A stretch of DNA of 63,811 bases, filler included, from Guillardia theta CCMP2712 (lineage: Eukaryota > Protista > Cryptophyta): NCBI RefSeq assembly GCF_000315625.1. It is 6 parts of 6 records of this genome, joined end to end, with 100 filler letters (N's around TTAATTAATTAA, not from the genome) between each part and the next. Parts side by side here need not be neighbours in the genome. Positions count along the whole stretch, not along the records: positions 11,635 to 31,950 come from NW_005434352.1; 5 more parts are not named here. One strand, written 5' to 3'. The position numbers and the translations under genes were made by a program. This document shows, piece after piece, positions 5,949 through 27,330 of this stretch (position 1 is its first letter; each line of letters opens with the position of its first letter). Under the pieces are notes generated by a model. That model saw only the letters and a program-made list of their open reading frames with translations. It ran no database searches and had not been told where the DNA came from.

Positions 5949-9234
<3,286 letters not shown>

Positions 9235-9477
9235 CAGGGCGACATCGACGTGTAATCGTCGGTTGTCATGATATACTTTCTTCGCTTTTCTGCCTCTTGC
9301 TGCATGCCTGAGGTTTTTTATAATTGTTGTGATGTATTCTTTCGTGATTATTCTCGTTATTCATTAAATTCTTTTACACCATCCTCCCTTCTTCGCTCCA
9401 TCTCCTCCATCTCCTCCTCATTCTTTCAGCTCTTGTGTCGTTTCACTGTTAATCTTTCAGCTGTTCAAGAAGCAGTT

Positions 9478-11310
9478 TCCTCGCAATTTCTGTGTGATCT
9501 GCATGACAACCATCAGCCTTTTGGGTACAAGATGGAAACGGACGAGGATGAAAGGATGAGAACGAGCAAACGCTGAAGAGCAGGAGGAGGTGAAGGAGGA
9601 GGAGCGGGAGGAGCAAAAGTATCGTTATCACCTGATGGCACGTCCTCTAATTCCTTGCACCTGCGAAGAAGTTGGTGAGGGGAGAAAGCCAAGAGCAGGT
9701 TCACAAAGGAGCAAGCGAGAGAAAAGAAGGGGGGGAAGGGAATGTTGGAGGGGATGGAAAGAAGGAAGGAGAGAGAGCAGGAAGGGACGGAGAGGAGGAA
9801 GGAGAGAGAGCAGGAAGGGACGGAGAGGAGGAGGCAAGGGAGTTGGCAGACCATGTTTTTGCGATTTCACATCTTGACTCGAGCAACTGAGAGAACATCA
9901 ACATGAGAAAACCCAAGGGTCTGGACTCCTCCTCCCTCCTTTCATTCATCCCGTTGCTCCTCGTTCTCCTCGCTCGTCCTAAGTCTCCTCCCTCCCTCCC
10001 TCCCTCCTTTCCACTCTTTTCCACCTTCTTGCCCCGTAGCTTTCTCTTCACTTTCTCCTTTCTTCCCTCAGTGTTTCTCGCTCCCTCTCTCCCTCTCGCT
10101 CCCTCCATCCCTCTCGCTCCTCAGTCTCTCCTCACCTGCTCGACCACAGCGACAGGATCCACGAGCGCCTGCCCGCCAAGTCACCTCCAGCCCTCAGCCT
10201 CTCCTCCTATCACCAGGCTCTCATCGTTTGCGTTACGAACGAAACTCGGCGACTGATTGAGCAGCATCTGCATGAAGCTACAAGAGCAATTTCAGCGCAG
10301 GCAAGGTCAGCGAGAGGAGATGGTGGTGGGAAGGCGAGAAAAACGTGGAGGAGGAGGAGGAGGAGGAGGAGGAGGAGGAGGTCGAGGGTGTAGTTGGGAT
10401 AACAACAAAAACACTAGAGGAAGCTCCTACTTGCGATCGACATCATAACCAGCGTCTCCTTCAAAATCTGTCCCATGCACCTGCATCACCACAACTCATC
10501 GTCACCATTTCATACTTCTCCTCATCCTCCCTCTCTTTCTCCCTCCCTTTTCTTCCCTTCCCGCCTCCTCCTCTCCTCTACCTTTCCAAATTTTCCACCG
10601 ACTCCCTTCTCTACCCCCTCCCCCCCATCCCTTCCTCCTCCCTCCTCTCATTTTGGAATTTTACCATTAGCATACGATCGAGCCAATCAGCACTGGTTTG
10701 CTCGTTCTTGTTCCCCCGCTTCTTCTCGGCAATGAATTTCTTGGAATCGCCATCACGAAAATTCAACACACAGAGGAGAATTTCACCTTGATCGCAAGAA
10801 AAGTTGACAACCGCTTCAGCAGATCGTAGTTCCCTCCCCTGTAGTTCGTCCCACAGTTGCCTGATCGTCTCTTTATTTGCCATGTATTGTTGGTAGTCAA
10901 GTCTTACTGTCTGACACGTCGTGGGCAAAGACTGGGAACTGAACGAGTTTCGTGAGAACGTGAAGAAATGGAGAGGAGCAAGTGAGAGAAGAGAAGAAGA
11001 CAAGACGACAAGACGACAAGAAGACAAGAAGACAAGAAGACAAGGAAGATGAGGACACGAAAGGAGGAGCGCAGGAGCGGCGGAGTAAGAACGTGGAACA
11101 AAAGAAGCAACGCGCAGACACACATCAACTGTCAACGAGAAACTCTGAAGACACCTGCATGTGAGCGTTCTTGTCCTCTTTCTCTCTCACTCTCTCGAGG
11201 TATCCTCGCCAGATCTCGTTCGACTCCTTGTCGAACAGCATCAGATCTTCCCGCCACTCGTTGGAGATCTCCTCTCTCAGCTTCCTGAGACGCCGGGCCC
11301 CGATCAGCAT
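9478..11310 (-). CDS. Partial multi-exon hypothetical protein (5' end lost in gap)
   Basis: Coding-like exons RRLRKLREEISNEWREDLMLFDKESNEIWRGYLERVREKEDKNAHMQ and TVRLDYQQYMANKETIRQLWDELQGRELRSAEAVVNFSCDQGEILLCVLNFRDGD, flanked by GT/AG and SSR-rich introns. No family recognised. Confidence 0.5.
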
Positions 11311-13600: not shown

Positions 13601-14108
13601 GCGAGTCAGGAAGGCACCATTTCATCGCCTCTTGCTCGTCCAGGGAGAGGGGGCTTGGGGAATGAGAAATGGGGGCTACCCCCCACCCCCTATCACAGAG
13701 TTTCAAACTGGATCAAAGGTGGGTAGTTGAGGGTGCTCCATACCCACCCCACCCCCCAACGAAAGTCAAACGGAGGGGTTCTCGGAAGTCGAAGTTCCGA
13801 CCAGTTTGGCCCTCGTTTTGTACCATATAAACGCTGCAATATTAAGTTGGTACCACAGATACTTCTAAAATTCGTACTTTTACTTTGGTTTGGCGTGGTG
13901 AGGTGTCCAAGCAACCAAATTCAAATCACCCTACCCCTCTTTGGCCCTGCGCAGCAACGATTTTCCTAAGAGCGAGTACCCTCCTACACGCCTTCTCAAA
14001 GTAGGGTACTCCCACATGGCATGAAATGAAGGGACCCCACAGGCCCTTCGAAAAAAAAAAATCTTGCCAATTTTTCCTATGAGCGCCCGGCCGGAAAAGC
14101 AACGCTAT

Positions 14109-14600
14109 GGGCCTCCATCTAGACTGATCTGATACCTCCTTGTGTCATCCGACTCATATATATACTGAGGCGGGCCCGCAGGGCCCGCCTTAGAAAAAAA
14201 AATGGAGAAAACTCACGTTGGGAGCCCCACCGCAAACATACCCCCAGATCCCCTCCCCCAGATCCCCTCCCACCTTCCATCTGAGGGCATGGAAAGGCTC
14301 ATTGGCCTCCATCTAGACTGATCTGAAGGCTCCTCGTATCATCCGACTCACATATATACTGAGACGGGCCCACAGGGCCCGCCTTAGTAAAATCTCACGT
14401 CGGGATTTCCGATCAATTAGTACATGAACTGGTTTATAGGTAGAAAAACCCTGGATTCTCAACTCAATTTCCAGTTGAGTTTCGACCTCGAAAAAAATCC
14501 TATACGTATAAATACGTTGCAAGTTTTTTCTTCCCGGTTCTCTCCCATATCATTTTATACCTCCCCGCGACCCCTCGGCTGAGGCGGGCCCGCAGGGCCC
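14109..14600. repeat. ~85-bp direct repeat (2 copies plus 1 partial) ending in a GC-rich hairpin
   Basis: GGCCTCCATCTAGACTGATCTGA...CTGAGGCGGGCCCGCAGGGCCCGCCTTAG at ~14110-14193 and ~14304-14387; hairpin core again at ~14579-14600. Confidence 0.85.
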
Positions 14601-14629
14601 CTTTTTTTTGAAGCGACCTTTTTAAAGCG

Positions 14630-14969
14630 CCAGCACGTGCGCTTGGTGCTAAGTTTTTTTTAGGAGTGTCATCATGTGTGCTTGGTGCTAAGTCTTTTTT
14701 TTGAAGCGACCTTTTTAAAGGGCCAGCACGTGCGCTTGGTGCTAAGTTTTTTTTAGGGGATCAGAACGTGCGCTTGGTGCTAAGTTTTTTTTGAAGTGTC
14801 ATCTTTTTTTAGGGGATCAGCACGTGCGCTTGGTGCTAAGTTTTTTTTTGAAGTGTCATCATGTGCGCTTGGTGCAAAGTCTTTTTTTGAAGGAACTTTT
14901 TGAAGGGCCAGCACGTGCTTGGTGCTAAGTCTTTTTTTTGAAGGGCCAGCACGTGCGCTTGGTGCTAAG
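14630..14969. repeat. Tandem array of GCACGTGCGCTTGGTGCTAAG(T)n-based units
   Basis: About 8 imperfect copies with T-rich linkers, directly visible. Confidence 0.9.
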
Positions 14970-15133
14970 ACCAAAAGTCACGATACCGTAGACCAAAGTC
15001 ACGATACCAAGGTCATGATACCGAAAGTCACGATACCAAGGTCATGATACCGAAAGTCACGATACCAAGGTCATGATACCAAAAGTCACGATACCAAAGT
15101 CACGATACCAGGGTCACGGTTCCAAAGTCACGG
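14970..15133. repeat. Tandem array of 14-15-bp AA(A/G)GTCA(C/T)GATACC units
   Basis: About 11 copies, directly visible. Confidence 0.9.
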
Positions 15134-16760: not shown

Positions 16761-17099
16761 TCGGCATTTGATTGCTCAATGTGCTTTCTTATTTGAAAAT
16801 AAATTCGTTTACTCAGGTTGTTGCAAAAAGATCTTGTTTTTTCTAGCTTCGAGCCCCTCACAGCTCGCTCCACTTTCTCTTTGATCGGCAGATGCTTTCA
16901 CTGAGGGAAATTCAGATGTCTTCTATGCTTTTTCTCGACACCTTTCTAGCAAACCTTGCGCGCGCGGACTCCCTAGGGGTTAATCTTGATGTGCCGCCTC
17001 AGTCCCCGTACCCGGTAGAAAATCGTGCTTTTCAAGGTCAGCACGGCCTCGGAAAGGGGTCCGGGGACTTAGGCGTTTTCGGGAGGCTTGGAGAGGCCA

Positions 17100-17741
17100 G
17101 ATGGCTGCAGGATCCTTCAGACCAGCCGTCTGGCAGACTTGGAAGAAAGATTGACTAAGGCTCGACACCCTGACCAAGACTCAGTGACTTACAAGCGTCC
17201 AAACTTGGAAAAAACTCTTGTCTGTAAGATACCAGGGTTACTTCGACTTGAGCTGTATAACTTTTTTTCCTTCTCCTCGTACGCCTCTGCCAGGCTTCAA
17301 ACCGCCCTGAATCCTTCACACACCTTTAGAAAAACTTGAGAAATACCCCCCCACACCTCCATGTCGAAATCGGCTAAGGTTGGAGTCGGCACTTTGTTGG
17401 AACCCGACGGCTTTGGCGTAACATAAGGTGGTGTTGAAGAGGTCGGATCAGACAATTCGCTGCAAGATCCTGCAGACTAGCTGTCTGACAGACTTGGGAG
17501 AAAGATTGACCAAGGCTCGACACCTTTACGCTGACTTACAAGCGTCCAAACATGGGCACTTCGTCTCCACTCGACGACTTTGGACTTGTAAAAAAGTGTG
17601 TTGACACAGTCAGATCAGACAGATGGCTGCAGGATCCTTCAGACCAGCCGTCTGGCAGACTTGGAAGAAAGATTGACTAAGGCTCGACACCCTGACCAAG
17701 ACTTACAAGCGTCCAAACTTACAAGCGTCCAAACTTGGAAA
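17100..17741. repeat. Dispersed ~80-110-bp direct repeat, 3 copies
   Basis: GATGGCTGCAGGATCCTTCAGACCAGCCGTCTGGCAGACTTGGAAGAAAGATTGACTAAGGCTCGACACCCTGACCAAGACT at ~17100 and ~17620, with a degenerate copy at ~17458; each is followed by ACTTACAAGCGTCCAAA. Confidence 0.85.
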
Positions 17742-18685: not shown

Positions 18686-19771
18686 TCATGGTCTTCTACC
18701 TGCATCTCTGAACGTCGCCAAAACACCGGTAAGAGTTTTATTCCAAGGTTTGCAAGTAATCATATCATCCTCCAGAAACCAATGTCCCCATTGCCTTGCT
18801 CGATTCACTTTGGGTTGCGTGCCTACGAGAAAATTGTTGTTCAGTATCACAGGTAATTTACCCCTACATGATTCGAAATATTTTGAATTTTTGTTGTACC
18901 ACAATCCAGAAGCAAACAAGCACCTGTCCAAGTTCACAAATTTCACTGTTTTGTCTCGCTTCAAGAACTCATGAAATACTTCTTGTTCGTGCAAAACCTG
19001 ATGGGGTCCAATTGTAACAGTATCACGTTGAGTCGTATACTGACTGATTTCGCGTATCATTCTAGCATACACCTCTTCCCACATTCGTGAACCAGGTGAA
19101 GAAGATTTGATGTACATGAATCCAGCCCCTACTGCTGGCTCCAAAGCTGGTTCACCATCACGATATAGCAAAAGGTCACAATGCATCATTGACTCAGAAA
19201 TAACAGGAATGACACTACGAGTCCAAACACAATCTGTCTCAAACATTAACACATTGCGATTTTTGAGAATTCGAATCAGATAATGCACTCGTAGAATTGT
19301 CAATTTCCTGTAACCCAGACTGTAAAATCCATGTGAGACTGCTCTCTCCTGGACAACAAACACTTTGACATCCAAAGCATGGTTTCGGATTGAGTTTTGC
19401 ATCTCAGTTGTGGTCACGGCCAGCAGAGTGCGTCGGTGTACGTCTGGCATGTGTGCAGTGTTACAGAGCCAATGCAAGATGAAAGGGAGATGATCTGCAT
19501 TACCAAACGCGTACATGATGAAATCACCTGGCATCCCACTGACCACCATGTCTAAGTCATCCAAACTACTTCCATTGGACGTAAGAGCAGATCGAGAAAT
19601 GTTCACTCTGTTGTACTCGAACAGATAAAAGTTGAAATTCAACCTTTGAACTAACAAAAAGTTCGATCGTAATTTAACAAAGATCAAACACATCACAAAA
19701 GCGAGTACGAAGCAGGAAATCCTTGTTACCGCTGAGGTTACGAATGTGGACTGTAAACAAATCTTTACCAT
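18686..19771 (-). CDS. Nucleotide-diphospho-sugar transferase (GT77 / Nucleotid_trans-like), type II membrane, intronless, 361 aa
   Basis: N-terminal TM, then FILHWLCN, VLMFETDCVW (DxD-like), VGAGFMYIKS, HEQ, LDRCLFASGLWY and ILNNNFLVG..KV.RARQWGHWFL, which are family-typical motifs. Confidence 0.82.
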   Translation of the reverse strand: MVKICLQSTFVTSAVTRISCFVLAFVMCLIFVKLRSNFLLVQRLNFNFYLFEYNRVNISRSALTSNGSSLDDLDMVVSGMPGDFIMYAFGNADHLPFILHWLCNTAHMPDVHRRTLLAVTTTEMQNSIRNHALDVKVFVVQERAVSHGFYSLGYRKLTILRVHYLIRILKNRNVLMFETDCVWTRSVIPVISESMMHCDLLLYRDGEPALEPAVGAGFMYIKSSSPGSRMWEEVYARMIREISQYTTQRDTVTIGPHQVLHEQEVFHEFLKRDKTVKFVNLDRCLFASGLWYNKNSKYFESCRGKLPVILNNNFLVGTQPKVNRARQWGHWFLEDDMITCKPWNKTLTGVLATFRDAGRRP

Positions 19772-22216: not shown

Positions 22217-25200
22217 TGAAATTCCAGGATTACTGATTAGCGCTTTTAATGACCGGTACTTTTGACTGCTCATATACGGGTACTTGCCCTCGCACAGAAG
22301 CACCCTTTTACCCCCATTATCATCTGGTAATAGGGGGTGGGGTATTTGAATTGTCATGGGCGGTAACCTTCAAGACCACCCCGGGCCACCCCGGGCAGTT
22401 TCCCACCGCTCACGGTACCATATTCGTAAATCATGAATTGGGGTACCTTGTTTGATGGGGGTGGGCAGTCGGGTTCGAATTTTTGTACCAGAAATAATAT
22501 TTGAGTAATTACATAAAAGTTGTTTTTGAGAGATTTTAGGATGTATATATGGTACAAAAGCTCCTGGTAACCCCTCTGGTTGACCCGGATCCTCACCACC
22601 CCCTCCCTCCCCCCTTAAATCAAGTTGTGCTAGCCGTGTTCCCCTTCCTTCCCCGCCCTGCAACCATCATGCCCCTTCCTCCCTGCCGCGCCATCTCACG
22701 GTGACCATCCCTTCCCCTCCACGCCCCTCCAACCATCCGGCCTTCCCCTCTCCCCCCCTCCAACCATCCGGCCTTCCCCTCTCCGCCCCTCCAACCATCC
22801 GGCCTTCCTCTCCTCGCCCCTCCAACCATCCGGACTTCCCTTCCCCGCCACTCCAACCATCCCCTCCCCACCCCTCCAACCACCGGGGCCTTCCTTCTCG
22901 CACAGGCTCCCGACGACCATCCCTTCCCCTCCCCGCCCCTCCAACCATCCCACCTCCCAGTTGTTGTTCCTCCCGATGAGTTGCCGCCCAAGATGGGAGT
23001 ACCTCAATTGATCAAAATCCCTTTTTCTTCTCTCGGGATGTTATTCCAGCAAGACACTGGCGCTCCTCAACTTGTGCTTCGTGAGGTAGTTGAGAGTCGC
23101 AAACGCGTGACTTTCTAAAACCCAAGTATGGGAATCTCGTTCTTGGACGGTGACTCAAACAAACAACTCGGGCATGGTATAAGACAAAAAGTAATCGAGA
23201 GTCATGTAGATGTTTACATTCTTTACACCAAGGATATCTTCAGACAACTGCAAGCCAATGTCTTGAGTGGAGTCGTTCAACTTAGCAATACCGTTGAACT
23301 TCACTGGCAATTGGAATTTAAACAATGGTGGCTGCAGCTGAGAGGAAAACCAAAGACTCGTTGTCTTGCTGCCGCAGAAGAAGCTCCTTTGAGATTGAAT
23401 GTGGAGATACAGGATACGTGCAATGCTGTTTTGTTTCTATCTGAGATCATGCAAACTGATTGGGCCCAATAAAGGTAGTAGCCATTTCTAAGAACCTCTG
23501 TTGTGCAAATGTAATTGAACATACCCTTTCATGATTCACAACTGCGCTTCGCGGCCACGAGGGACTGGTAGTATGGGCCATTGACAATCAGCTTGTGAAG
23601 ACAGAAACTGCCGCTAACGAGGTTGGATGGCTGATTTTCAGATTTGCCAAGATCTAGCGTTATGGCTAGACTGGAAAAAATATCTGGACCCAAATAGTTC
23701 CTGTTAAGCCGGCTTACCAAGGCCATTTCAGCTTACAAGCTCATCCGCGCCAAAGATAGCAAATAAAACTTTTAGGTTAAATTTATGTATTCAAAATCAT
23801 TTGTAATTCTCTTGCTTTGCCGCGGTTCCACATTGAGGGCCAACTCACCATGCTCAGCAAGTTTCTGGGGACGACTTCATCAACGGCTCATGTTTTCTTT
23901 CCTCTCTTCGACGTTTTCCTGAAACAAAAATGGAAATGGTGACTTCAGTTGCCTTCTTAGGATTGCCAGTTGATAATGTCATTGTTGCACAGTCATAGCC
24001 TCCATTGATCGTGACAACAAGCCGTTGTGTTTCCCGTGAAGGTTGAAGATATCAATCCACTCTTCGACAAGTTGAAGAAGGCCGAGACCATGAGTCCCAC
24101 CATCCACTCTTACCTGTGATATTTTTGGCAAAGGAACAAAGCAGCCAGCCATGCTATCGTTTGCACGACAGAATCCTTGGTACTGCGATTTCGTTATACC
24201 GTTTGCTGTGAGGGCAACTGCTGCTTCCCGTGGGGTAGCCATCATTTGTCTGACCACAGGTTTCAGGCAGTTTTGAAGCTCCTTATTCGTGGCAAGTTCA
24301 TTCTTTAAGAAGAACGTAAGGCTATCGTATTTCGAAGTTTTGCACTTCGGAAGTTCTGCTTTCGCGGCCCCTCGACCGCTTCCTCTCCCCCGGCAGAGTC
24401 TTCCTCATTGTAGCGGTGTAATAGATCAGCAAAATGTCCCCATTTCACTCGAAAATTGGCCTTGTGTGATGCAAATTGCCGATCTACCTTCTTCGTGACC
24501 ACATCTAGAAGGTCCGAGGCTCATCAGTGTCACCCTGGATCTTCGTCAGAATCGCTGTTTTCACTTTTGGATCTTTGATAGCATCGTAACAAGCCGGGTT
24601 TGGTTCATCGGAGTCAGGGGAAATAATCGCTTCGCGCATGGCTTCATCCACATGATCACTAAAACCTCCATGCTCCTCAGACTCTAGTAAGATTCGAAGC
24701 AACAACTCAGGAGATCTACCTGCATCCCAGGTGTTACAAAGATTTGAATTTTACAAATGATCTCTTTTCAAACCTATGGCCTTCTCCTTGTTTATAGAGG
24801 AAGCCCTCTCGTCTTGCCAGAAACTCCCAGGTGAGTTGATTGAATTCATCATCATCCAGCCTGGCAGGGTGATGGTTTGCGACGTCTGCACGAACTTCCT
24901 TGCAAAAGGTGGGGATGACGGATTTGATATATTTGGTCCTGACATGATTAATCAATGTTTCAATGTTCAAACTATATTGGTAAATTTCAAGATCCCACTG
25001 ACATGTCTCTCAACCAGAGCCGTGGCAATTGGCCTCTAGGAAACATTTAAATCCCTGAAATAGGGATGGGTGGGGTGGGATCAGGGGAACAGGGGGGACT
25101 ACCCTACCCCCTATTTGTCAAAGCACTAGCAGAGAAGGACCCGGTGGCTTCATTCTTGTACCAAAACCAGAAACACAGTACACCATGAATTTGAATCAGG

Positions 25201-25491
25201 TACAAAATACCTTCGAACATTTGTATTGTGTTTCCAATTTATATTTGTTTTATGATTATCCGTATCCTTCTAAAAAGTTTTCGCAGCCTTAAAACATGTC
25301 GTCTGTTAAAAGTTTCGAGGGGAGTGGGGTGGTCTTGAAGGTTACCGCCCATGACAATTCAAATACCCCACCCCCTATTACTAGATGATAATGGGGGTAA
25401 AAGGGTGCTTCTGTGCGAGGGCAAGTACCCGTATATGGGCAGTCAAAAGTACCGGTCATTAAAAGCGCTAATCAGTAATCCTGGAATTTCA
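22217..25491 (-). mobile_element. 3.3-kb DNA transposon with 166-bp TIRs and a decayed RAG1/Transib-like transposase
   Basis: Inverted repeats 22217-22382 and 25326-25491 (two mismatches by eye). The minus-strand pseudogene has ordered motifs P..SQY..R..G.F.PL, LVVTINGGYD, KVLFAIFGADE, CLHKLIVN and NVNIYM..PEL. The TIR call is firm; the family call is moderate. Confidence 0.7.
22703..22953. repeat. C-rich ~29-bp subterminal tandem repeat (CCCCTCCAACCATCCGGCCTTCCC...)
   Basis: About 8 imperfect copies inside the 166-bp-TIR element. Confidence 0.85.
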
Positions 25492-25669
25492 TATACCAGT
25501 GCAGCCCCCTGAATCCCAATATAGTGCGATATAAAAAAGTCTTGTCTCGGTCACGTGATGTGTCACGTGACCGGTCAGGTGAGCCTGTCAGCCGGGTCAC
25601 GGCCCCTGTCAGCCGGCTGACATGTCACGGGCCTGCTGACACGGTCCGCTGACCGGTCACGGCCGCCCG

Positions 25670-25861
25670 GAGACATCAGGCCCCCGGCCAATCTCCGGAC
25701 ACTTAGCCTCCTGGCGGGCCTCCAGGGGGTCTGAGGCGGGGCTGAAGGCTGCAGTCGGTCTACTGACCGGCCCGGCCGGCAGTCGGTCTACTGGCAGTCG
25801 GTCTACTGAGACATCAGGCCCCCGGCCAATCTCCGGACACTTAGCCTCCTGGCGGGCCTCC
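25670..25861. repeat. 54-bp GC-rich direct repeat, 2 copies
   Basis: GAGACATCAGGCCCCCGGCCAATCTCCGGACACTTAGCCTCCTGGCGGGCCTCC at 25670 and 25808. Confidence 0.85.
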
Positions 25862-26299: not shown

Positions 26300-27330
26300 C
26301 CTTACCAACGCGCTAGATACGATTATGCAAGCTTAGAGACTTCGAATCTTGATGTAGTCTAACATGATTGAAAGCAGAACTATGAAAGTGTTGCCATCTG
26401 GCATGCATGCCTCGATTTACGGACAGCCGATATCCCTCACTCTGGTGATAAAACCATTCAGCGTGTGGTGGATACAAAATTACGTTGCAAAGGCGTGCTG
26501 CAACTTGCTGCATTGCTTGATAGTACATATGCGTTCGACTCGATGACGATAGAGCGATTCAAAACCATCATGATTCTGTGGATAGTTCGACAGATTGATC
26601 ACTTCTTGGATACACAGCAGAGCTGGCTTTTCGCATCCTTGTTCAAAATCCTTGTTCAAATCAGTCTCCCACAGAGCGGCCTTTAGGTAAGATAGCCCTA
26701 CAACTTGCATCATCGGACTATCGCTTTCTTCCGAAGTCCAGGCTCTTCCTGCCCCGCGTGAACTTAATGCCGACGTCGTGTTGGGCGACACTTCAAGTTT
26801 CACATGGATACGCCATGTTCTCGCCAAAGTGCTAATGAAGACTTACAAATGCTTTGCGATGTTCCATCTCGTTCATTCTTACTGAAATATACCACCTTGA
26901 AGTGTGCTTGTGCTTGTGTTGTTCTACATCCTGCACCATGCGCTTGCAGCACTGGGTTGAATTGAATACATCAACTGTCATTTCTCATGTCTACACCTGA
27001 GTGTATGCATGCGTGCATATCATGGAAAGAAACATGTCATCTTACGATTTCCAAATAGTGATGCATGTTAGCGTTGTAAATGCTAATGCTAAACATCACT
27101 GGTTTTGCTTGTCAATGACAACTTGAGCAAATCACAAGAGGTTTTCACAATTACAAGAAGCATGCATACATGATGCGGTTGACTTGACAAGAAATTCACA
27201 CAAACATTTGTTGGTTCATTTATGTGCATGTCTCCTTTATGTATGGAACGCATCATTAGGACTCTAAGCTTACGGTTGAACATGATTGCAATGAAAGAAA
27301 CCTTAATGAAACGATGAAAGAATCCTGAAA
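26300..27330 (-). pseudogene. Decayed KDZ-like transposase, catalytic half
   Basis: Minus-strand fragments FGENMAYP and VAQHDVGIKF (~26755-26830; cf. GExxAYP, YDIGCKF), then LQHAFA and VRDIGC..IEAC (~26405-26505). Confidence 0.5.

Follow-up and report, generated by a model that had tools for sequence, protein, structure and literature searches.

We describe a transposon remnant at positions 22391-25523 of a 63,811-nucleotide window, by which we mean the whole stretch of DNA analysed, from the cryptophyte Guillardia theta CCMP2712. The remnant derives from a two-gene cut-and-paste transposon of G. theta or its close relatives, a copy of which is preserved here in dead and partly deleted form. 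It is decayed and non-autonomous, and the transposase of its family is likely to be a DDE/RNase-H-type enzyme of the RAG1/Transib-like group within the CMCT clade, which includes EnSpm/CACTA, Mirage, Chapaev, Transib, Plavaka, ESTA as well as Lanisha (Kojima 2025, PMC12730594). Intact members of the family measure 4.6-4.65 kb and feature a single-exon transposase gene of 767-838 amino acids (aa) as well as a convergent second open reading frame (ORF2) of about 387 aa. What is left in the window is an ordinary dead fragment, non-functional in all respects tested, and its frameshifts, stops, 1.26-kb core deletion, broken ORF2 and replaced 3' terminus leave it without autonomy. An initial annotation of the same DNA had proposed a RAG1/Transib-like transposon in which 166-bp terminal inverted repeats (TIRs) enclose a minus-strand pseudogene; both the repeat and the pseudogene are real, but the repeat does not represent the TIRs of the family, as the full-length copy L006 has no second 166-nt segment.

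The transposase gene survives on the minus strand, between the two arms of the repeat, where stop-free, protein-like pieces follow one another while the reading frame shifts. A word search with a 141-aa piece from the window led to a 220-aa ORF (P0002) on the metagenome contig L001, the DNA of which is 87% identical to window 24001-24971. Since L001 reads three of the window pieces in one single frame, the window copy is frameshifted. The possibility that pieces D and E are separated by a tiny GT-AG intron was also considered and rejected, as other copies carry frame-restoring indels at this place. Compared with the intact 838-aa transposase P0016, residues 1-366 are kept but disrupted by several frameshifts, a single stop and some small deletions, after which the pseudogene jumps to residues 783-838. 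The deletion has thus removed residues ~367-782. The catalytic core is shortened by ~420 residues, among them the second Asp, CxxC, CxxH, HxxxxxH and the Glu, and a loose end in run X2 is located at 23927, at the deletion breakpoint. The initial annotation had both catalytic Asp positions retained; only the first candidate, at 23992-23994, is left in the window copy.

The six protein fragments previously read as RAG1-core motifs in this region have different origins. Fragments 1 (PREAAVALTANGITKSQYQGF...) and 2 (LVVTINGGYDCATM...TISIF) are genuine transposase and correspond to P0016 253-287 and 335-365, respectively, with the first candidate Asp being part of fragment 2. Fragment 3 (SSPETC) belongs to the C-terminal tail (P0016 ~805), because the deletion joins residue ~366 to residue ~783. 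Fragment 4 (23720-23782) resides in the spacer that separates the ends of the two genes, while fragments 5 (23578-23606) and 6 (23161-23232) run antisense to the ORF2 remnant. With fragments 3-6 thus placed in tail, spacer or antisense sequence, their DALHC- and YFHKTLAH-like matches and the claimed second Asp are, as judged from sequence comparison, chance resemblances, and the real counterparts of these motifs in the family all reside in the deleted segment. A Pfam scan of the pseudogene pieces gave no match, and a PDB sequence search with the two pieces bearing the best motifs returned nothing even at E 10. Further, RNA-seq reads from organism A (run X22) were placed within the window copy only at 24224-24931, with 160 of 170 fitting partly. 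The first mate is nearly always on the minus strand, and whether this means sense or antisense depends on the library chemistry. As the reads include a 35-nt segment missing from the window copy at 24784/5, they probably come from other family copies.

An exhaustive HMMER search with P0002 returned only two further clusters, P0003 (520 aa, from L003) and P0004 (767 aa, encoded by a single unbroken ORF of L002, 41% identity). The same 90% protein clusters hold the G. theta CCMP2712 hypothetical proteins GUITHDRAFT_110778, GUITHDRAFT_114463 and GUITHDRAFT_122885, so that the host is G. theta or a close relative, in agreement with the cryptophyte suggested initially. These clusters also hold the intact P0016 (838 aa), P0012 (744 aa) and P0014, as well as P0009 with MMETSP transcripts. 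The element is present at high depth in public runs of two organisms and in several aquatic metagenomes, and therefore represents a multi-copy family. A word-based protein search with P0004 and alignment A2 retrieved only the family itself and an MMETSP fragment, and the metagenome scan gave no contigs beyond the two already found. Subfamily 1, to which the window copy belongs, includes L006-L009, and subfamily 2 includes L010-L014, L016 and L002, among them the G. theta scaffold JH993011.1; the transposases of the two are ~45% identical. Intact ORFs occur in L011 and L012, copies that are 99.87% identical at different sites. Judging from such intact ORFs in near-identical copies and from the MMETSP transcripts of a related subfamily, active copies apparently exist.

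The boundaries of the element were set from independent insertions with unrelated flanks. The TIRs found in this way are only ~9-10 nt long and imperfect (5' CATATTGG; 3' inward CATA(C/T)CGG), and the difference between the 5' and 3' ends (TT vs CC) is kept between the subfamilies. Both ends of both subfamilies read CAT...ATG and thus agree with the 5'-CA...TG-3' termini of CMCT elements, and neither CAC heptamer (CACAATG-like) ends nor a nonamer-like block were found in intact copies. A 5-bp direct repeat is absent from all complete independent insertions (L006, L010, L011 and L012), and in three of these four, L011 being the exception, the element is flanked by one identical base on either side. 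The L006 copy is located inside the integrase ORF of a Ty3/gypsy retrotransposon and therefore offers a natural empty-site test: removing the element plus one T restores the frame ...SGLT-PFEIIYGRE..., so that at most one base was duplicated. The flanks of this copy (2314-2947 and 7599-10319) carry a chromodomain and SH3_Tf2-1 on one side and a reverse transcriptase-integrase ORF on the other. No uninterrupted copy of this host retrotransposon was present among the loci examined, and L015, L016 and L017 provided no new complete insertion owing to gaps, truncation or a duplicate flank. The target-site duplication (TSD) of ≤1 bp is also outside the 2-5 bp of CMCT elements. Intact copies hence depart from the CAC termini and 5-bp TSDs for which the initial annotation had proposed to examine them.

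In the window copy, the 5' terminus is at 25523, reading TATATTGGG inward with a first base unlike that of L006, and the end reads (C/T)ATATTGGG, 22 nt beyond the CACTG that had been taken as the right end at 25501. This CACTG is internal, as two independent copies, L003 and L006, and also a metagenome contig remain homologous up to 25520-25523. The X1 contig diverges past 25521, and a different, extremely abundant repeat starts at 25525. At the opposite side, canonical 3' subterminal DNA stops at ~22391, where the terminal CATAC is replaced by the left arm of the 166-nt repeat across an 8-nt junction. For a TSD of the window copy, the continuation of the adjacent high-copy repeat was sought within the window and none was found.

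At every locus of sufficient length (all of L006-L014), the transposase gene is followed, tail to tail on the other strand, by ORF2. Counted from a conserved Met, the ~387-aa ORF2 is 52% identical between subfamilies with ~45% identical transposases, and is therefore a real gene under constraint. The window remnant of ORF2 features in-frame stops and frameshifts and has lost residues ~172-262, and a shorter relative of its ~31-nt Pro-rich array is present in L003 3959-4068. ORF2 gave no Pfam match, no PDB sequence match and low recognition in the ESM-Atlas. Its AlphaFold2 model, based on a 3-sequence alignment, has mixed helices and strands and a predicted local distance difference test score (pLDDT) of 33.7; Foldseek matches of this poor model were scattered and unrelated, with neither RAG2 nor kelch among them. 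The initial annotation, which proposed to look for a kelch-repeat partner, had missed this conserved convergent gene. Nothing in these searches speaks for a RAG2-like or kelch protein, although a model of such low quality could miss one. Since it is conserved within the element, ORF2 may serve as a transposition cofactor.

For the transposase, language-model neighbours and structure searches all point to RAG1/Transib, each with a weak score below formal significance. In the ESM-Atlas, the clusters nearest to P0004 are arthropod RAG1_RNase_H clusters at 0.96 and 0.95 (192 and 187 shared features), and chordate RAG1 clusters with RNase_H, ZnC2 and ZnH2 domains are found at 0.91-0.94. No Pfam family is assigned to 18 of the 40 neighbours, and in a control a shuffled protein scores 0.95 about once per 100. 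The N-terminal 220 aa (P0002) have neighbours that are all DUF8422 (PF28514) from arthropods and rotifers, at 0.91 and with few shared features. The AlphaFold2 model of the transposase, based on a 9-sequence alignment, is poor (pLDDT 41.5). Nevertheless, in the Foldseek comparison suggested in the initial annotation, ranks 1-21 in PDB are all RAG1 (E 0.007-0.18, template modelling (TM) score ~0.1), and HzTransib also appears. VIA-align placed model 168-674 collinearly on RAG1 460-952, including model 535-673 on RAG1 822-951 at 4.5 Å over 129 residues, and the Atlas shape search with the same model gave only LysM-type rows. The equally poor ORF2 model, which acts as an internal control, yields only scattered matches without such convergence, and this argues against a generic artefact of poor models. 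Additionally, the motifs INYD(G/C)AT, RSDxQG, FCxxC, CxxH, YFHSLxVGH and SN(V/G)ENRHR are kept in all three subfamilies, and so are the candidate catalytic and zinc residues D264, D378, C399-x2-C402, H655-x5-H661 and E686 (P0004 numbering), spaced by 114 / 21 / 253 / 25. The corresponding residues of mouse RAG1 (D600, D708, C727/C730, H937/H942 and E962) are spaced by 108 / 19 / 207 / 20.

Several points weigh against this assignment. Pfam scans of P0002-P0004, P0010, P0016, ten sub-domains and ORF2 gave no relevant family, in a Pfam copy that possibly lacks the newest RAG1 sub-domain models and DUF8422, and phmmer and profile searches of PDB returned no RAG1 or Transib at E ≤ 10. The catalytic residues were assigned by motif order and spacing, not by alignment to the RAG1 sequence, and the ends and the TSD are defined by only four complete independent insertions. 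Further, no CMCT structures other than those of RAG1 and Transib have been solved, and these two would come out on top for EnSpm- or Chapaev-like enzymes too. HHpred gives RAG1 even for the EnSpm-like ESTA (PMC12730594), so that PDB matches to RAG1/Transib indicate membership of CMCT, not of Transib. It is accordingly possible, albeit the less probable option, that the transposase belongs to another CMCT lineage (EnSpm/CACTA, Mirage, Chapaev, Plavaka, ESTA or Lanisha) or to a new sister, RAG1/Transib coming up only because no other members have been solved or well annotated. All CMCT lineages have C(2)C and H(3-4)H, mostly together with CA..TG ends (PMC12730594); CAT rather than CAC termini, a TSD of ≤1 bp rather than 5, the many Atlas neighbours without a Pfam family and the absence of RAG1 from the HMMER results would likewise fit. 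However, EnSpm-type Pfam families (Transposase_21/24 etc.) are absent from all scans and Atlas neighbours, the neighbours that are annotated are RAG1_RNase_H, RAG1_ZnC2 and RAG1_ZnH2 clusters, and the TSD is outside the 2-5 bp range of those lineages as well.

We regard it as improbable that a poor model and language-model noise have produced the resemblance artificially, and that the enzyme is of an unrelated or unknown transposase class. The low pLDDT, Foldseek E values of 0.007 or above, TM of ~0.1, LysM-type rows in the shape search and entirely negative HMMER searches would be expected in that case, but three differently built searches converge on one family among thousands, a shuffled protein rarely reaches 0.95, the ORF2 model of equal quality shows no convergence, and seven conserved catalytic or zinc-type residues stand in RAG1-like order and spacing.

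Among known systems, Transib is defined by 5-bp TSDs and by TIRs with the invariant first three bases CAC (Kapitonov and Jurka 2005, PMC1131882). The Guillardia family shares with Transib a single-ORF transposase of ~700-840 aa and an element size of 3-5 kb, and HzTransib is the best structural neighbour of its transposase, the Atlas neighbours of which carry RAG1_RNase_H. It differs in having CAT instead of the invariant CAC heptamer at its ends, short imperfect TIRs (~9-10 nt) in which a second, nonamer-like block could not be recognised, at most 1 bp of duplication instead of a 5-bp TSD, an extra conserved convergent gene and a His pair spaced H-x5-H rather than H(3-4)H, and in the absence of HMMER-level similarity. 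An element with RAG1L and RAG2L, AanRAGL, has been described from the pelagophyte alga Aureococcus, with TIRs of the CAC... type and TSDs of 5 bp (Tao et al. 2022, PMC9435367); Guillardia is not named as a host in the text or the checked supplements of that study. With such RAGL elements (ProtoRAG, AanRAGL) the Guillardia family has in common the two genes, a RAG1-like transposase and a partner, in convergent orientation as in ProtoRAG, and with AanRAGL also the unicellular-alga host. Unlike the Guillardia family, RAGL elements feature 5-bp TSDs and CAC... TIRs in which two blocks are conserved, and no RAG2, kelch or PHD signal was detected in ORF2. The CMCT lineages described mostly have CA..TG ends and 2-5 bp TSDs (Kojima 2025, PMC12730594), compared to ≤1 bp here, EnSpm-type Pfam domains are missing from the Guillardia family, and ORF2 is, as far as tested, unrelated to CMCT accessory genes such as TnpA-like or TET/JBP. 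As the CAC ends and the 5-bp TSD were not found when tested on intact copies, the family is filed as RAG1/Transib-like in the broad sense: its nearest annotated relatives are Transib and RAG1, yet it is a distinct variant. The earlier proposal of a relative of the V(D)J recombinase ancestor holds insofar as RAG1/Transib are the nearest annotated and solved relatives, but not with regard to the CAC ends and 5-bp TSD of Transib. This variant of the RAG1/Transib-like clade in a cryptophyte is apparently undescribed so far, although G. theta repeats may already stand in Repbase.

The arms of the inverted repeat in the window are 166 nt long and 99% complementary, with two mismatches, and a 27-mer from the repeat has no further occurrence in the window beyond the two arms and never appears in shuffles. 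The left arm is an inverted copy of element positions 33-198 without the outer 32 nt that bear the terminus. L006 has no second copy of the segment, and 3' ends of its type map to window ~22391, so the left arm, previously regarded as an end of the element, is outside it. Since the arms are ~99% identical while different copies diverge by 9-19%, and since L006 is without the arm, sequence comparison suggests that the left arm is probably specific to this copy and no family TIR, having arisen by a recent local inverted duplication or through repair or template switching. A point against this explanation is that no independent contig among those listed bridges 22382/22391, where the assembly may be at fault. 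Long TIRs built from one end do occur in derivative elements, and the high identity of the arms could suggest that the repeat is functional, serving as TIR to a derivative, non-autonomous subfamily that is mobilised in trans. We consider this very unlikely, because the left arm is without the outermost 32 nt with the conserved terminus, a TSD is absent, the arrangement was not seen at any other locus examined, and left-arm depth in run X2 is very low, though two-arm contigs may be placed on the right arm only. The least credible option is a bona fide Transib with 166-bp TIRs, a CACTG terminus at 25501 and RAG1-core motifs in order with both Asp, for although the inverted repeat is real, fragments 1-2 are true transposase and the nearest relatives are RAG1/Transib, homology with independent copies runs 22 nt beyond 25501, L006 ends at window 22391 with no second 166-nt copy, fragments 3-6 are outside homologous coding sequence with the second Asp in the deleted 1.26 kb, and intact copies show CAT ends and no 5-bp TSD. 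The local duplication thus remains our preferred explanation, and the parts of the window copy are listed in Table 1 together with one intact element of each subfamily.

Table 1. Parts of the window copy (window positions) and representative intact elements (locus positions).
Feature	Position	Strand	Description	Basis
Left arm, inverted copy of 25326-25491 (5' subterminal segment)	22217-22382	+	Outermost 32 nt missing; outside canonical 3' end; no equivalent in full-length L006	
Junction, left arm to element 3' subterminal DNA	22383-22390		CCACCCCGGG in tandem; canonical terminal CATAC of L006 missing	Direct reading vs L006 end
Element 3' subterminal region	22391-22610	+	87% identity to L006 7594-7377; homology of metagenome contig begins exactly at 22391	
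Expanded C-rich tandem array	22620-22990		~31-nt units, Pro-rich when translated; within upstream/N-terminal part of ORF2	
ORF2 remnant	22951-23708	+	Residues ~65-171 and 263-432 of L006 ORF2 kept	tblastn
Spacer between stop codons of the two convergent genes	23709-23785		77 nt; contains fragment 4	
Transposase pseudogene	23786-24945	-	P0016 residues 1-366 and 783-838 kept	
Breakpoint of ~1.26-kb deletion	23922-23937		L006 4633-5896 lost (P0016 residues ~367-782)	
5' leader, subterminal segment to transposase start	24946-25325	-	Homology to L006 and L003	
Right arm, original 5' subterminal segment	25326-25491	-	Conserved at 91% in L003, L006 and L015	
True 5' terminal 32 nt	25492-25523	-	Inward start TATATTGGGATTC (CATATTGGGATT in L006); holds internal CACTG	
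Subfamily 1 element	L006 2948-7598		4651 bp, 838-aa transposase; 5' end CATATTGGGATT; 3' end, reverse complement, CATACCGGGCAG	
Subfamily 2 element	L010 5483-10094 (G. theta genome)		4612 bp; 5' end CATATTGGTC; 3' end, reverse complement, CATA(C/T)CGGTC	

The surrounding part of the window is repeat-rich overall. To the right of the element, 25524-25700 belongs to a different repeat, which has many palindromes of the GTCACGTGAC type (inverted repeats I2 and I7) and a 54-nt direct repeat at 25670 and 25808. The summed contig depth of this repeat reaches ~1.28 million in run X2, compared with 10^2-10^3 for the transposon. As 69 contigs share the same upstream continuation of this hyper-abundant repeat beside the element, the transposon has seemingly inserted into or next to it. 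Further to the right, an AT-rich block at 27100-31100 (26-36% GC vs 40-50% around it) includes a 676-aa ORF with 33-nt tandem units (SNILY-type repeats; 28349-30379, plus strand) and no Pfam match, and a 186-aa ORF (30480-31040, minus strand) with a weak SLATT_5 match (E 1.4e-4, below the cutoff). This block may be a viral or polinton-like insertion; expansions of polinton-like viruses have been described in cryptophytes (PMC12220804). To the left, a 361-aa ORF (18686-19771, minus strand) clearly matches the glycosyltransferase domain Nucleotid_trans (PF03407; E 4.9e-16) and probably represents a host gene, and tandem and dispersed arrays with 35-nt, 29-nt, 92-nt and 114-167-nt units are found at 14107-15123 and 17098-17733.

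Based on the intact copies, the transposase would bind the short imperfect ends (5' CATATTGG... / ...CCGGTATG 3'), and DDE-catalysed excision at the CAT...ATG ends would be followed by near-blunt reinsertion with a duplication of ≤1 bp. In the window copy, the 5' subterminal 166 nt would have been duplicated locally in inverted orientation, taking the place of the 3' terminus, and its "long TIRs" are an example of how such a duplication mimics transposon ends. RAG1, the basis of antibody gene rearrangement, arose from Transib/RAGL transposons. The reach of the RAG1 lineage into unicellular eukaryotes is an active question, with the RAGL element of Aureococcus reported only in 2022 (PMC9435367). 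In this regard, we raise as a speculative and rather doubtful option that cryptophytes may harbour a deep, undescribed two-component RAG1/Transib-like lineage, in which a DDE transposase is combined with a non-kelch ORF2 that has acquired a RAG2-like role by convergence, CAT ends and a stagger of ≤1 bp. If true, this lineage would mean that the 'RAG1 plus partner' architecture also arose independently outside animals and pelagophytes, and RAG1-like catalysis, a convergent partner, non-CAC ends and almost no target duplication, if combined in one element, would widen the mechanistic range of the clade.

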